Shown: positions 1,039-64,000, counted from the first letter of the stretch. The stretch is DNA of 64,000 bases from Hemiscyllium ocellatum (GCF_020745735.1 NC_083433.1:6645363-6709362), one strand, 5' to 3'. Made by a program: numbers and translations. Notes: generated from the sequence alone by a model not told the origin.

Positions 1039-1818
1039 TCGTCTTACTTTGACCGGGATGATGTTGCCCTGCGTCACTTTGCTGAGTTCTTCAAGGAGCA
1101 GTCCCATGAGGAACGGGAACACGCTGAGAAACTGATGGAATTCCAGAATAAACGTGGAGGCAGGATCCTCCTGCAGGATGTCAAGGTTGGGTTTAGTTAT
1201 ACCTCTAACCAGCTTCACTGGATCTTGTGGCAACAAATGTTTTGAAACCATTGATTCCATTGGTTCAATGCTGTAACTATTGACATTCTAGTTCATAGAA
1301 GCATCTGTCTCTTCCCTCCCTCCAGAAGCCAGAGCAGGATGAGTGGGGCAATGGTCTGGAGGCAATGCAGAAAGCTCTGCAGATGGAGAAGGATGTGAAC
1401 CAGAGTCTGCTGGATCTGCACAAACTCTCCTCTGGCCACATGGACCCTCATGTGAGTTCTTCTGATTTCAATAACATTTTGGAAAACTGGCTCAAAAAAT
1501 CTAATGAAGCTGTCGAACAAGAGGGTGGGGTCAAGAATATGGGTTCACATATTAGGAACCACATGAAGTTGCAATGAATGTAGAAACTTGACATGATGTC
1601 ACCAACTAACTTCAAATGGAGTGCACAAGTTCCTCAATACCCTGTTTTATTTTCTCTTCCAGCTGTGTGACTTCCTGGAGAGGCACTACTTGGATGAGCA
1701 AGTGAAGATGATCAAGAAGCTGGGAGATCACATCACCAACCTGAAGAGACTGGGAGCCCCTGAGAATGGCCTGGGAGAGTACCTGTTTGACAGGCTCAGC
1801 CTGGGGGAGAGTGACTGA
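1039..1818 (+). CDS. Ferritin (M/H-type) unit A, exons 2-4; exon 1 presumably upstream of the window
   Basis: Exons 1039-1185, 1326-1451, 1663-1818, all with AG/GT borders. Translates [31 protein letters not shown]...[17 protein letters not shown] at 1928-1933. Confidence 0.9.
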
Positions 1819-2349
1819 ACTGATGGCAGGGAGAAAAGTTTGGTTTTCTGTATGTGATCTGGAGTGAAGCACTTGCTGTGGAAGCAGTTAATTGTTCTGG
1901 GTTTGATCATGAAATTTTCCAACTGTAAATAAACTCCTGTTGGATTGAGTTAGTCTGTGCTGTGAAATGCCTGTCATTAGCAATCTCGATCACTAGTTAT
2001 ATCTGGTCCCATACTTCCCCTGGCAGCGAATTGTCTTATGCCTATATCACATGATATGTACACTGACCTAGGCTTATGAAGTAAATTTTTCTTCAGTATA
2101 ATGCAAGACAGGCATTCTGACAACTGAACACTTAGCTACCAAGAGCTTTTCCTTCAAGGGAAAGACTAAATGTAGTCCTGGGTGGACATACCAGTGGCAT
2201 TGTTCTCTAATAGCTTTCCTACATGTCCAGCTCTCACCAATCAAACATCAGCTGGTGTGGTTCTTCAAATTCAAAACTAGCTTCTCCACTCCCTGCATCA
2301 CTAAATGAGAGCAAGCCTTCTCAGGAATCTTCTGCTGCCATCACAATAT

Positions 2350-3045
2350 TAGAACATAGAACCATACAGGCCATTTGGCCCTCAATGTCATGCTAGCCTT
2401 TCATTCTACTAACTGTGTCTATCCAAGACTCAATTAAATGTCCCTATTATCTCAGACTCTACTATCACTGCTAGCAGTGCATTCCATACACCTACCACCC
2501 TGTAAAGAACACACATCTTTTTCCCCCCCCCCACCCCCAAACCTCCTTCCAAACACCTTTTAATGTTATCCATCCTGCAATAGCCATTTCCACCCTGGGG
2601 GGAGAAATATCAGTGCCTCTAAATCTTGTACGTCTCTATAAAGTCATTTGTCATCCTTTTTCACTCGTGAGGGAAGCTAGGGCTTCCCTCACTGCCTCCA
2701 GTCCAGGCAGGATCTTGGTAAATCTCCACTACACCCTCTCCAAAGCTTTTACAGCTTTCTGATAATGAGGTGACCAGAACTGAACACAATATTCCAAGTA
2801 TGGCCTAACCAGTGTTCGATAGAGTTGCAGCATAACCTCACGGTTCTTAAATTCAATCCTCTGTTCATGAAAGCCAATCTACCACATGCTGCCTTAACCC
2901 TATTGATTTGGGTTGAAAATTTGAGGGATCTTTGGACGTGAACCTGATGATCCCTCTGTCCCTCCACGTTGCCAAGAATCCTGCATTTAACCCTGTATTC
3001 TGCATTCAATCTTGACCTTCCAAAGTGAATCACTTCACACTTAGT
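2350..3045 (-). mobile_element. CR1-type LINE 3' fragment
   Basis: Minus-strand translation KCEVIHFGRSRLNAEYRV..ILGNVEGQRD..VHVQRSLK resembles the CR1 ORF2 C-terminus; 3' tail (agaacatagaac) near 2350. Confidence 0.82.
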
Positions 3046-3069
3046 AGATTGAATAAAACTCTGATGACA

Positions 3070-3359
3070 ATAGATTAAACTAAATTCCCTACAGTGTGGA
3101 AACAGGTCCTTTGGCCCAACTTGTCCACACCAACCTTCCAAAGAGTAACCTAGACCTATTCCCCCAGTTTACTCCTGACTAATGCACATAACTTCATGGG
3201 TAATTTAGCATAACCAATTCACCTACCTGCACATCTTTGAACTATGGGAGGAAGCCACCACAGACACTGAGGGAATATGCAAACTCCACACAGGAATCGA
3301 ACCCAGGTGTCTGGTGCTGTGCGGCAGCAGTGCTAACCACTGAGCCATTGGGCCACCCC
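3070..3359 (-). mobile_element. tRNA-derived SINE (HE1-like), degenerate
   Basis: Reverse complement starts with A-box TGGCTCAGTGGTTAGCAC and B-box GGTTCGATTCC, and ends in a CR1-like tail (cctgtttccacactgtaggga). Confidence 0.8.
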
Positions 3360-60650: not shown

Positions 60651-61703
60651 CAGAGGCGAGGCAAGTCAAGAATGAACAACATTGCTGTGGGTCTGGGGTC
60701 ACAGATTTCTTTCTCTAAAAATTATCACTGAACCAGATGGATTTCTGTGAAAAATCAACAATAGTTTGTTTTAACTTCATTCATGGGATAAGGGTATCAC
60801 TGGCTAAGTCAGCATTTATTGCCCATCCTGAACTCCCCAGAGGGCAATTGAGAGTTGACTATGTTGCTATGGGCCTGGAGTCACATGTAAGACCAAACCA
60901 GGTCTGGATCACAGTTACTGTCCAGTGAGTCAGATAGATTTTTCCTGAAAATGGCTTCATGGTCATCATTAAACTCTTAATTCCAGACTTTTATTGAATT
61001 CAAATTCCAACCAGGTCCCCAAAACATTTGCTGGCTCTCTGGTATAATACTCAGCAATAATACCACTGCCTCCCCACCACAATCACCATCACTGAGACTT
61101 GCTTTGTATTCCAAATTAATTAGTTGAATTCTACCCAGCTGCCATGGTGGGATTTGAGCTCATGTCCTCATGGAGTTAATCTGAGCCTCTCAGTGACAAT
61201 ACCATCATCCCCCTACAGTGTAGATTCACCGGAATGATACCAGGGCTGAAAGGCTTGAATAGTGAGGACACTTTGCAAACAGTGGACTTGAGTATCGAAG
61301 ATTAACGGGTGACTATACTCGAGGTTTGGAAAATAACGAATGGGTTTGAGGAGTCAGATGGAGAGAAATTATTGCACCGTGACCAAGGAGAAGGATGCTA
61401 TAATTATCATGTGACCATTCAGAGCAGTTGCTCGGAATCACCTCCTCATAAAAAGGAATCAGAAATCTGGACTCTCTTTCCCAGAAACATTGGGAGCAAA
61501 TAATCTGTTCAGATCTGAGATAGTTAGGTGCTTGTTGGTTAATGGTGTGAAGGGAATGCAGGACCAATGTGGACAGGGGCAGGAAGCAACAGACCAGCCA
61601 TGATATCATTAAATGGCAGCACAGGCTGACAGAGCCAAACATCCTCCTCCTGTTCCTCAGTGACAATCACTGAATGATCCAAATCTGCCTCCATTTCAAA
61701 GCT

Positions 61704-61915
61704 CTGATTAGCTCTAGGTATCTCACCTCACCCTATGTCCTTCATCAGTTCCTAGATTCATGGCAATTCCTGATTGTCTCTGGGTATCTCACCCCTCCCT
61801 ATGCCCTTCATTGGTTCCTGGATCCATAGGGTTTCCTGATTGGCTGTCAAGGATTGTCAGTGATCATTGGGAATCATTCCTTGGTTGAGTGCAGGCTGTC
61901 CCAGGAGGATAAATA
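61704..61915 (+). promoter_or_regulatory. Promoter of M with a tandemly duplicated 66-bp module
   Basis: CTGATT at 61704, 61770 and 61836; GATAAATA 61908-61915. Confidence 0.68.
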
Positions 61916-61982
61916 CAAGAGGTAATGGGAGTGTGGCTTAGTTCTAGAGTTGTGTAGGTGATAGTGAGCAGGAATAGTGAAG

Positions 61983-64000
61983 ATGGCCTCCCAAGTGTGT
62001 CAGAACTACCACAAGGACTGTGAGGATGCTGTTAACAAGCAGATCAACCTGGAGCTCTATTCCTCCTATGTTTACCTCTCAATGGTGAGGCTTTTGGGCT
62101 TGATAGTCCATTCCTTCTTTTCCCCCACCCCACCAACAGCAATGAGGGATGGGTGATAATTTTGAGACCTGTTAATAATGTTCCATGTTTCATAGCTGAT
62201 TCTTAAATTGTATATTGCATTGGTAGAATATTTTAAGCCACTGAGTTGTCTTTTGAATGTTTCCTCCTTGTGCCTACTTTATATCCACTGAAGTGATTAT
62301 TGCTAACTTTTATTGGTTGCCTTGTTAATTGACTGCTCTGTATTCAATAAATTTGGCTTTATTCTGAAGTGTTTCAGACTGGAACTAAATCTAAGACTTG
62401 TTGCATCCTCTTGGAGGTTGATCTCATGTGTAAACCTGTTCAAACTTTCAATTTTGGATAAAACTTAATTGTATGACTTTCTTATGAAATGTTAATTATT
62501 TGAGCCCTCTTCTGTCTCCTTTCTAAATGAGTATGAGGTTCTTCTATGAAGCAATAATGTGAAAATATTGTCAAAGAACTTCTCTCAATGTAGAAATGGG
62601 CCCTTTTGTGACCCAGTCCATGCTGAACATAATCCCAATCTGGACTAGGCCCACCTGCCTGCTCCTGGCCCATATTTCCCCCCTCCCCCCCCCCCCCCCC
62701 CCCCCCCCCCCCCTGACCTTTCCTATTCATGGATCCATCTAAATGTCTGCAATATGGTAACTGTAACTGCATTTACCACTTCCTGAGAAGGTTCATTCCA
62801 CATTTGTGCTACCCTCTGGGAGAACTTGCCTCATGATTTTTTTTTACAACTGTTCCTCTTCATGTGCCCCCTTGTCTTGAAATTCAACTGATACTAGATG
62901 GTAACTTGGGGGTTTTGCTGCAAAGATTTGATTACATCAGTGAGTACTAAAGTTTGGGCTTCCTGAAATGGAGGTTGGGATCTGAGGTGTCTGGTCAAAC
63001 TTATAAGACTAGCTCCTATTCCAATGTGCTTGGTTGTGATTATATACCCACCTGATTAGACCTTGATAAACGTAGGGATAAATGATCTGCTTTGGTCACA
63101 TGAATTCATGACGACAAGAGGCCATGTGGCCCCCTGCAAACAAGCTCATTTGTTTGCATTCTGCAATCTGTTAATTCTTGATGAATGTCTTTGTCTTTGC
63201 CTAACAATACCGATCTCTAATAGGTTGGAGGTTGAGTTGCAAGATCACCTCCAGCCCCTCTCTTCCACCCATCAAAACAGATGACCTTTATTCTTAAACT
63301 ATGCTCTCTAGTGCTGACCTCTACCCCACCCCAGGACATTCCTACCTTGTCCAGACCATTCAGCAGTTGTATGCAGGTTGTTTTACTATAATGTGTTTCC
63401 CTAATGTGATGGACAAAAAAGGACACTCATTCTAAAGCAGACCTCTTAAAAATGTGGCTGTGGCACAACAACTCTGCCAATACTTTAAGCACGGTTTCTA
63501 AAGTGACTTTTATCAGCATTGCACAAGAATGCAGCCATCACATTAACAAGAACTGCCGATACTCATTCTTGTCTAAGCTGAAAGCCAGCCACACAGGGTC
63601 TTGGTGAGGTTCTCAATGGGTGAGATGTGGAACTTCCCTGACTCTGCCACTTTCTCCTGGTTTCTTTTTTCTCCCTCCGCAGTCCTCTTACTTTGACCGG
63701 GATGATGTTGCCCTGCGTCACTTTGCTGAGTTCTTCAAGGAACAGTCCCATGAGGAACGGGAACACGCTGAGAAACTGATGGAATTCCAGAATAAGCGTG
63801 GAGGCAGGGTCCTCCTGCAGGATGTCAAGGTTGGTCTATCCTGCATTACAATTAACAGTACTAAATATTTGAAGCATTCATTCCCAAGGGATAATATTAT
63901 ATGGTTAACTTTACCTTTTTATTCCATTGTGTTTTGGCTCACATTTCATTGAGTGAAATATCTGCCTCTTCCTTTCCTCTTCCAGAAGCCAGAGCAGGAT
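61983..64000 (+). CDS. Ferritin unit M, exons 1-2 and start of exon 3 (runs off the window)
   Basis: Exons 61983-62084, 63683-63829, 63986->64000; consensus protein sequence, open so far. Confidence 0.9.
62678..62713. repeat. Poly-C tract in M intron 1
   Basis: About 35 C with one T; paralogous sites in J, K and L have only short C runs. Confidence 0.85.

Follow-up and report, generated by a model that had tools for sequence, protein, structure and literature searches.

Ferritin genes without an iron-responsive element in a tandem array of the shark Hemiscyllium ocellatum: exon homogeneity and turnover of units

The DNA analyzed in this work, a stretch of 64,000 nucleotides from Hemiscyllium ocellatum (GCF_020745735.1, NC_083433.1:6645363-6709362; hereafter the window), holds 13 ferritin units arranged head-to-tail on the plus strand. 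Our results indicate that it is most probably a piece of a large shark tandem ferritin cluster, constituting a birth-and-death array whose genes lack the iron-responsive element (IRE) and whose exons are converted between units, with mass production of ferritin in ovary or oocyte as its likely use. The array is already known, as it was reported in a preprint (bioRxiv 10.1101/2024.09.09.611499) and its genes are annotated in RefSeq; the missing IRE switch and the copying of exons between units are apparently undescribed. In the literature on shark, elasmobranch and chondrichthyan ferritin expansions, nothing was found beyond that preprint, which deals with the Greenland shark, and neither the IRE nor the conversion aspect was found.

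Missing iron-responsive element and promoter architecture

The units, named U1 to U13 (Table 1), were located by a motif scan and then by tblastn, for which peptides of the four exons of a single copy served as queries and which detected no exons on the minus strand of the window. Seven are intact, two are cut by the window ends and four are dead. An earlier interpretation made from the DNA alone, here called the sequence-only reading, had proposed precisely this tally of same-strand units, which exon mapping reproduced, as well as a start at position 1039, which is the first base of exon 2 of U1; the window opens inside the first intron of this unit, its exon 1 lying upstream. Each full unit comprises four exons, the first three of 102 (counted from the ATG), 147 and 126 nt and the fourth of 144 nt, to which the stop codon is added; they are separated by three introns, with GT/AG splice sites throughout and all introns in phase 0. 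The 147- and 126-nt middle exons presumably match those of the vertebrate H gene. Unit size is 1.7-2.9 kb and intron length 125-1842 nt, and the window sequence is without any N. The product has a length of 173 aa, or 176 aa in the type found in U1 and U2.

Vertebrate cytosolic ferritin is a textbook case of translational control by the IRE and the iron regulatory proteins (IRPs). Throughout the 64 kb, no match to the IRE (Rfam RF00037) was obtained, either at the gathering threshold or at E<=10, and a motif scan for the element gave nothing near any of the 10 visible 5' ends. Canonical FTH sequences were used as positive controls in the same Rfam search: a skate FTH gene and transcript displayed IRE_I at 42.6 bits, about 95-130 nt before the ATG, and a shark-like FTH transcript displayed it at 42 bits. 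Thus, the element is found where it is expected, and the negative result in the window is meaningful. Further, the tandem locus of the same ferritin family in Heptranchias perlo, a hexanchiform, has no IRE either, and shows TATAAAT at -82/-84 with a TGATTGG box upstream, a layout like that of the window units. Given leaders without an IRE, the mRNAs should escape translational control by IRP1 and IRP2.

Other RNA elements were also considered. No conserved leader hairpin was detected among the units, and such an alternative structure was rejected on the RNAalifold consensus energy of -0.06 kcal/mol and the absence of covariation. Weak Rfam matches to MIR848, SNORD57, ZFAT-AS1 and OppA were far under their own thresholds and were discarded.

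An ATAAAT TATA box is located 61-74 nt upstream of the ATG at all 10 visible 5' ends, and in 7 of the 10 units the A of an initiator-like TCAGTTC or TTAGTTC falls exactly 31 nt past the TATA start, a spacing from which a leader of merely 30-43 nt is predicted. The ~270 nt before the ATG are 73-89% conserved among U4-U7 and U10-U13, with a divergent version in U8 and U9. The CTGATTGG box, an inverted CCAAT of Y-box-like type, occurs 17 times against 4.2 expected, chiefly in the promoters. Full units carry AATAAA 55-85 nt past the stop; in U1 this signal stands about 110 nt past the stop, at a distance of 122 nt downstream of base 1806, with which the 144-nt block of exon 4 ends. Separately, we noted a 66-bp tandem duplication in the U13 promoter (2.2 copies, 80% match; 61704-61845) that adds a CTGATTGG-type box, and a similar duplication in the U12 promoter (56691-56830), which also adds a copy of the box.

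Exon homogeneity and turnover of the units

Exons are 93-97% identical between units, identity dropping to random no more than 10-20 nt past the exon borders, and introns 1 and 2 are unalignable for most unit pairs. Synonymous divergence (dS) between paralogues is 0.04-0.14, and the seven intact proteins are 92-98% identical. Self-comparison of the window resolved the region from 37 to 64 kb, with U10-U13, as a true tandem repeat of 5-6 kb at 75-94% identity, and a 4.6-kb repeat, 95.5% identical, shared by U8 and U9; U1-U7 are alike in exons and promoters only.

A scaffold of Chiloscyllium punctatum from an independent assembly (L005) is collinear with window positions 3921-13420 at 93-94% identity, allowing U4 to be compared with its orthologue. 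Their dS of 0.043 matches the divergence of introns and flanks (0.04-0.09), which implies that silent sites drift at about the neutral rate. The silent divergence between U4 and its paralogue U12 is 0.048, even though the introns of these two units are unrelated. Within U5, which is a pseudogene, exons 1-3 show 26 differences from the consensus in 348 positions and exon 4 a single one in 144; a tract of ~160 nt at this exon is 98-99% identical to other units, and the same holds for exon 4 of U2. U4 displays the opposite pattern, with 10 differences in the 144 positions of exon 4. Moreover, U8 is a mosaic, its intron 1 being sister to that of U9 (divergence K 0.025) and its intron 3 being nearer to U10 and U11 (0.07-0.08) than to U9 (0.117), and 64 of the 136 informative site pairs failed the four-gamete test. 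Taken together at the level of sequence comparison, the orthologue data, the pristine exon 4 of U5, the mosaic introns and the grouping of proteins by shark order described below point to exon-limited gene conversion acting atop birth-and-death turnover.

One stretch of U4 exon 4 (9945-9962) deserves separate mention: seven differences fall within 14 nt, changing KRLGAP into RQLECP, and they are not present in the C. punctatum orthologue. This cluster resembles the outcome of a micro-conversion with a divergent donor, or else of a complex mutation.

Birth and death is seen directly in the four dead units, including a deletion in U3, and the LINE (long interspersed nuclear element) remnants in the spacers point in the same way. 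The break in U3 exon 4 (6629-6631) corresponds to a deletion of ~650 nt; since the segment is kept in C. punctatum (L005 2700-3347), where exon 4 of the U3 orthologue is complete and carries the ..LTLGESD tail, the truncation is a lineage-specific deletion. Immediately past U5 exon 1 (window 13420 onwards, L005 10118 onwards), collinearity between the two species falls from 93% to 70-85%, and the C. punctatum gene at the U5 position looks intact, with an unrelated intron 1 of 1.6 kb, which suggests an unequal crossover, or a replacement, that has a breakpoint inside U5 exon 1 or adjacent to it.

Regarding selection, dN/dS is 0.08-0.4 among U6, U7, U8, U9, U11 and U12, and it reaches up to 0.8 in U4 pairs. 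The proposal of the sequence-only reading, a birth-and-death or dosage-amplified array making very large amounts of a nearly uniform ferritin for a specialised tissue or stage such as the oocyte, is supported: it fits the identity of the intact proteins, the four dead copies of different kinds, the dN/dS values and the conserved promoters and poly(A) signals, and the one publication on shark ferritin clusters describes the largest as expressed specifically in ovary. The near-uniformity was borne out, and its upkeep is attributable mainly to exon-limited gene conversion among old duplicates and not to recent amplification.

Some features of the window lie outside this comparison. CpG transitions make up 11 of the 97 differences from the consensus, at just 7 CpG sites, in U6, U7, U11, U12 and the dead U10; among them are the stop of U10 and the substitutions R>W, R>C and R>Q, and in some cases several units show the same change. 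A Pfam search of 27 non-ferritin open reading frames (ORFs; 49-193 aa) mined from spacers and introns revealed no other genes and only weak reverse-transcriptase fragments, probably decayed retroelements. The LINE endonuclease remnant (Table 1) explains the long spacer between U9 and U10 and the strong purine skew at 40-42 kb.

Table 1. Ferritin units and other features located in the 64-kb window
Feature	Position	Strand	Description
U1	1039-1818	+	Exons 2-4 at 1039-1185, 1326-1451 and 1663-1818; 176-aa type, tail ..LSLGESD before the stop
U2	4571-5027	+	Dead, 5'-truncated; reduced to the final ~25 nt of exon 3 followed by intron 3 and exon 4; tail ..LTLGESD before the stop
U3	6013-6631	+	Dead; exons 2, 3 and first 17 codons of exon 4 (break at 6631); exon 1 absent
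U4	7206-10012	+	Intact 173-aa ORF; intron 3 of 1.3 kb; exon 4 divergent
U5	13304-14980	+	Pseudogene; 1-nt deletion in exon 2, E27>A
U6	20928-23215	+	Intact 173-aa ORF
U7	26061-27783	+	Intact 173-aa ORF; several radical substitutions (M>T, R>W, E>A, K>Q)
U8	31994-33754	+	Intact 173-aa ORF; young duplicate of U9
U9	36605-38366	+	Intact 173-aa ORF
U10	45058-47730	+	Pseudogene; lone CGA>TGA stop in exon 2 (46889-46891), otherwise consensus-like
U11	50612-53493	+	Intact 173-aa ORF
U12	56961-59579	+	Intact 173-aa ORF; protein identical to RefSeq XP_060705512.1
U13	61983-64000	+	Exons 1-2 (to 63829); remainder past window end
U12 promoter and leader (example)	56700-56960	+	CTGATTGG boxes; ATAAAT 64 nt before ATG; initiator-like TCAGTTC 31 nt after TATA start; no IRE
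LINE endonuclease remnant	40521-40817	+	Stop-free 99 aa; Pfam Exo_endo_phos, E 7.9e-07; in the 6.7-kb U9-U10 spacer, outside genes
Weak RVT_1 fragment	11163-11558	+	E 1.2e-4, under the Pfam cutoff; in spacer
Weak RVT_1 fragment	3782-4099	+	E 5.4e-3, under the Pfam cutoff; in spacer

Encoded proteins, relatives and comparison with known ferritins

The exon translations were searched with the Pfam Ferritin domain (PF00210, cutoff 24.5 bits), which gave 44.7 bits for exon 2, 24.9 for exon 3 and 17.1 for exon 4 alone, and with phmmer against the PDB every exon matched ferritin chains at E 1e-13 to 1e-22. The top solved match is bullfrog M ferritin for exons 2 and 3 (78 and 60 bits) and the human L chain for exon 4 (78 bits); for exon 1, the top solved matches are H-type and invertebrate ferritins. 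All seven ferroxidase residues, which we take to be E27, Y34, E61, E62, H65, E107 and Q141 in human H numbering by motif alignment, are present in U4 and U6-U12, and U1 and U3 have the five that are encoded by exons 2-4. With ~70% identity to solved ferritins, the ferritin fold is safe to assume, and the assembly of a 24-mer for iron storage is predicted. No N-terminal signal peptide, transit peptide or targeting leader was found in the window proteins; this, together with the complete ferroxidase set, predicts a cytosolic H/M-type subunit with an L-like last helix region. FTMT and processed ferritin pseudogenes were ruled out by the three GT/AG introns per full unit and by the lack of an N-terminal leader.

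Relatives were retrieved with a stop-free 110-aa ORF holding exon 2 of U13, scored over the exon, and then with the full-length relative that it returned. The nearest proteins are RefSeq models of Chiloscyllium, Hemiscyllium, Stegostoma and Rhincodon, designated 'ferritin heavy chain A-like', 'higher subunit-like' or 'oocyte isoform-like'; XP_060705512.1, which equals the U12 product, is a Hemiscyllium ocellatum protein named 'ferritin heavy chain, oocyte isoform-like'. At 90% identity, cluster sizes are 127 for orectolobiforms, 138 for Pristiophorus, 180 for Heptranchias and 69 for Stegostoma. No RNA-derived contigs of the amplified family were present among the matches listed.

A chondrichthyan ferritin phylogeny, which the sequence-only reading had suggested as a check, was built by maximum likelihood from proteins chosen by similarity to exon 2. 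The amplified clade that contains the window genes is exclusive to sharks (support 100/99) and stands apart from a canonical FTH clade with chimaera, skates, sharks, lamprey and tetrapods. The amplified family is ~70% identical to canonical shark FTH, and the window proteins are 87-90% identical to those of Heptranchias, Pristiophorus, Carcharodon, Scyliorhinus and Mustelus; in Heptranchias, a tandem locus of the family is present. Both C-terminal types (176 aa ending in ..TLGESD, and 173 aa ending in ..TLS/N/H) occur in every shark order sampled; the proteins of the clade nonetheless group by shark order, with order-specific residues.

Two additional observations concern other ferritins. A second amplified shark family, annotated 'middle subunit-like', is ~75-78% identical to the window family (clusters P0152, P0167, P0168 and P0173, with 76, 45, 43 and 19 members, respectively), and may correspond to the FTL copies of the Greenland shark preprint. 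Furthermore, in a skate (9842-10664, minus strand) and in the catshark S. canicula, canonical FTH is followed within a few kb, in tail-to-tail orientation, by a second ferritin gene with a longer product of 216-222 aa.

The closest described system is that of the Greenland shark, in whose genome 155 FTL and 179 FTH1 copies were reported, ~80% of them in three clusters, with synteny identical to the white shark, more than 85% full-length copies, ovary-specific expression of the largest cluster, and an age of the clusters of at least 250 million years (Sahm et al., bioRxiv 10.1101/2024.09.09.611499). Like the window, the Greenland and white shark clusters consist of massively tandem, intron-containing FTH1/FTL-like genes, and they belong to the same shark-wide amplified clade. 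The preprint treats these clusters, in other species, in one paragraph, without mention of IRE loss, promoter, M/L mosaic or exon-limited conversion.

The window genes share with canonical FTH1 and with bullfrog M ferritin (PDB 1MFR) the Pfam Ferritin domain, the four exons with phase-0 introns, and the complete ferroxidase residues. Conversely, canonical FTH of cartilaginous fish carries a 5' IRE (42 bits), whereas the window family has none and a predicted very short leader; canonical FTH exists in one or few copies, and the amplified family in hundreds, with an L-like C-terminal exon. In the hadal snailfish, fthl27 forms 14 tandem copies that are recent, species-specific, broadly expressed and linked to tolerance of reactive oxygen species (ROS) (eLife 2023;12:RP87198). 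As in the window array, these are tandem heavy-chain-like ferritin genes of a fish, read as a dosage increase; the arrays of sharks are ancient and of much greater size, and their expression is reportedly ovarian. Ferritins without an IRE also exist elsewhere, namely snail yolk ferritin, plant ferritins and mammalian FTMT and FTHL17, which are removed from the control of the IRPs and instead under transcriptional or tissue-dependent regulation. In snails, the yolk ferritin is the secreted storage form of oocyte and yolk, plant ferritin is targeted to plastids, and FTMT and FTHL17 are intronless retrocopies. The shark genes of the window have kept their introns, lack a signal or transit peptide, and are amplified in tandem.

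Alternative explanations and biological meaning

In the mechanism that we propose, each unit would be driven by its own promoter with TATA, initiator and CCAAT/Y-box elements, would have a predicted leader of ~30-43 nt, and would end at its own poly(A) signal; with no IRE, output would be set by transcription and gene number. Units would be gained and lost through the tandem duplication of entire units (U8/U9, U10-U13), through truncation and deletion, and through point knock-outs and the insertion of LINEs, and frequent short conversion in the exons, and partly in the proximal promoter, would keep old duplicates near-identical in coding sequence while their introns diverge beyond alignment. 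Ferritin would then be produced in mass in the ovary or oocyte, for maternal iron provisioning or for iron detoxification. An IRP-independent bulk supply of ferritin for oocytes is likely, judging by the published statement on another shark.

Several points weigh against this interpretation. The ovary expression refers to the largest cluster of that other shark and may not apply to the present cluster, and the start site, the leader length and the tissue in which the array is expressed are predictions. As far as the DNA alone can tell, the leaders might hold a non-canonical IRP-binding element. Few synonymous differences (2-12) underlie the dS values and the comparisons of orthologues, with U4 as the single orthologous gene cleanly comparable, and the grouping of proteins by order could partly reflect lineage-specific re-expansion. 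In addition, several of the copies counted as intact carry radical CpG-type changes (R>W, R>C, R>Q, Y>H) by which their function may be impaired.

The destination of the product is where a competing explanation is strongest. Instead of provisioning oocytes, the array might serve a somatic role, such as antioxidant defence, immune iron withholding, or tolerance of pressure or oxidative stress, and snailfish fthl27 is a tandem precedent tied to ROS tolerance (eLife 2023;12:RP87198). We consider this role unlikely, as the sole expression statement on shark clusters is that of ovary specificity (bioRxiv 10.1101/2024.09.09.611499), and the loss of the IRE fits a storage product made whatever the cellular iron status.

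It is rather improbable that most copies are functionless passengers, with one or few expressed and the rest drifting toward the pseudogene state, their intact appearance owed solely to conversion from the live copies. Such decay would agree with the death of 4 units out of the 11 that lie wholly inside the window, with the radical CpG-type changes in several intact ORFs, and with the dN/dS of up to 0.8 in U4 pairs, compared with 0.19-0.40 in U7 pairs (except U4-U7 and U5-U7). Nevertheless, all seven intact units retain the ferroxidase residues, the splice sites, the TATA, initiator and CCAAT boxes and the poly(A) signals, dN/dS is 0.08-0.22 among U6, U8, U9 and U11 (to 0.37 with U12 added), and the preprint reports ovary expression for a whole cluster (bioRxiv 10.1101/2024.09.09.611499).

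The homogeneity of the exons could also be explained without conversion, if strong purifying selection that includes synonymous sites, through codon use or mRNA structure, held the old duplicates at 93-97% identity. The dN/dS below 1 and the conserved promoter do show functional constraint on the units, but synonymous sites appear free to drift, as the dS of the U4 orthologue equals intron and flank divergence, and such selection leaves unexplained why the dead U5 and the lone fragment U2 have an exon 4 98-99% identical to that of live genes, why intron relationships are mosaic, and why nearly half of the site pairs (64/136) are incompatible. This explanation is accordingly very unlikely. A young, lineage-specific duplication burst, in which copies are alike because they are recent, is highly improbable for the array as a whole: it describes well the U8/U9 repeat (95.5% over 4.6 kb) and the U10-U13 repeat of 5-6 kb at 75-94%, but introns and spacers are saturated for most pairs, the arrangement of U2-U5 is common to Chiloscyllium punctatum, the family and both tail types are present in every shark order sampled, and the clusters have been dated to at least 250 million years (bioRxiv 10.1101/2024.09.09.611499). 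Lastly, the wrong expansion of one or few genes in the assembly, a general risk with tandem repeats and nothing more, has a practically negligible chance, since the units have introns of different lengths (125-1842 nt) and sequences and also differ in their spacers, in transposon content and in private substitutions, and since collinearity extends over 9.5 kb in an assembly made independently for a sister genus; the sequence-only reading had likewise considered such artefacts unlikely, in view of the divergent introns.

Returning to the converted, IRE-less array as the preferred interpretation, a wider proposal can be put forward tentatively, as a serious possibility: that sharks possess a vertebrate 'yolk ferritin' system, M-like and outside IRP/IRE control, driven by TATA and Y-box promoters, maintained as hundreds of converted copies for more than 250 million years, and supplying iron to large, yolky oocytes whatever the iron status of the cell. 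In itself, the array contributes little to current knowledge; the regulatory and evolutionary detail could matter. The sharp contrast between exons and introns makes the array a clean case for the study of exon-restricted concerted evolution. If our interpretation is true, a large, ancient and apparently functional vertebrate ferritin family without the IRE would constitute a natural experiment on the purpose of IRE control, and the finding would bear on the supply of iron to the embryos of large-yolked vertebrates.

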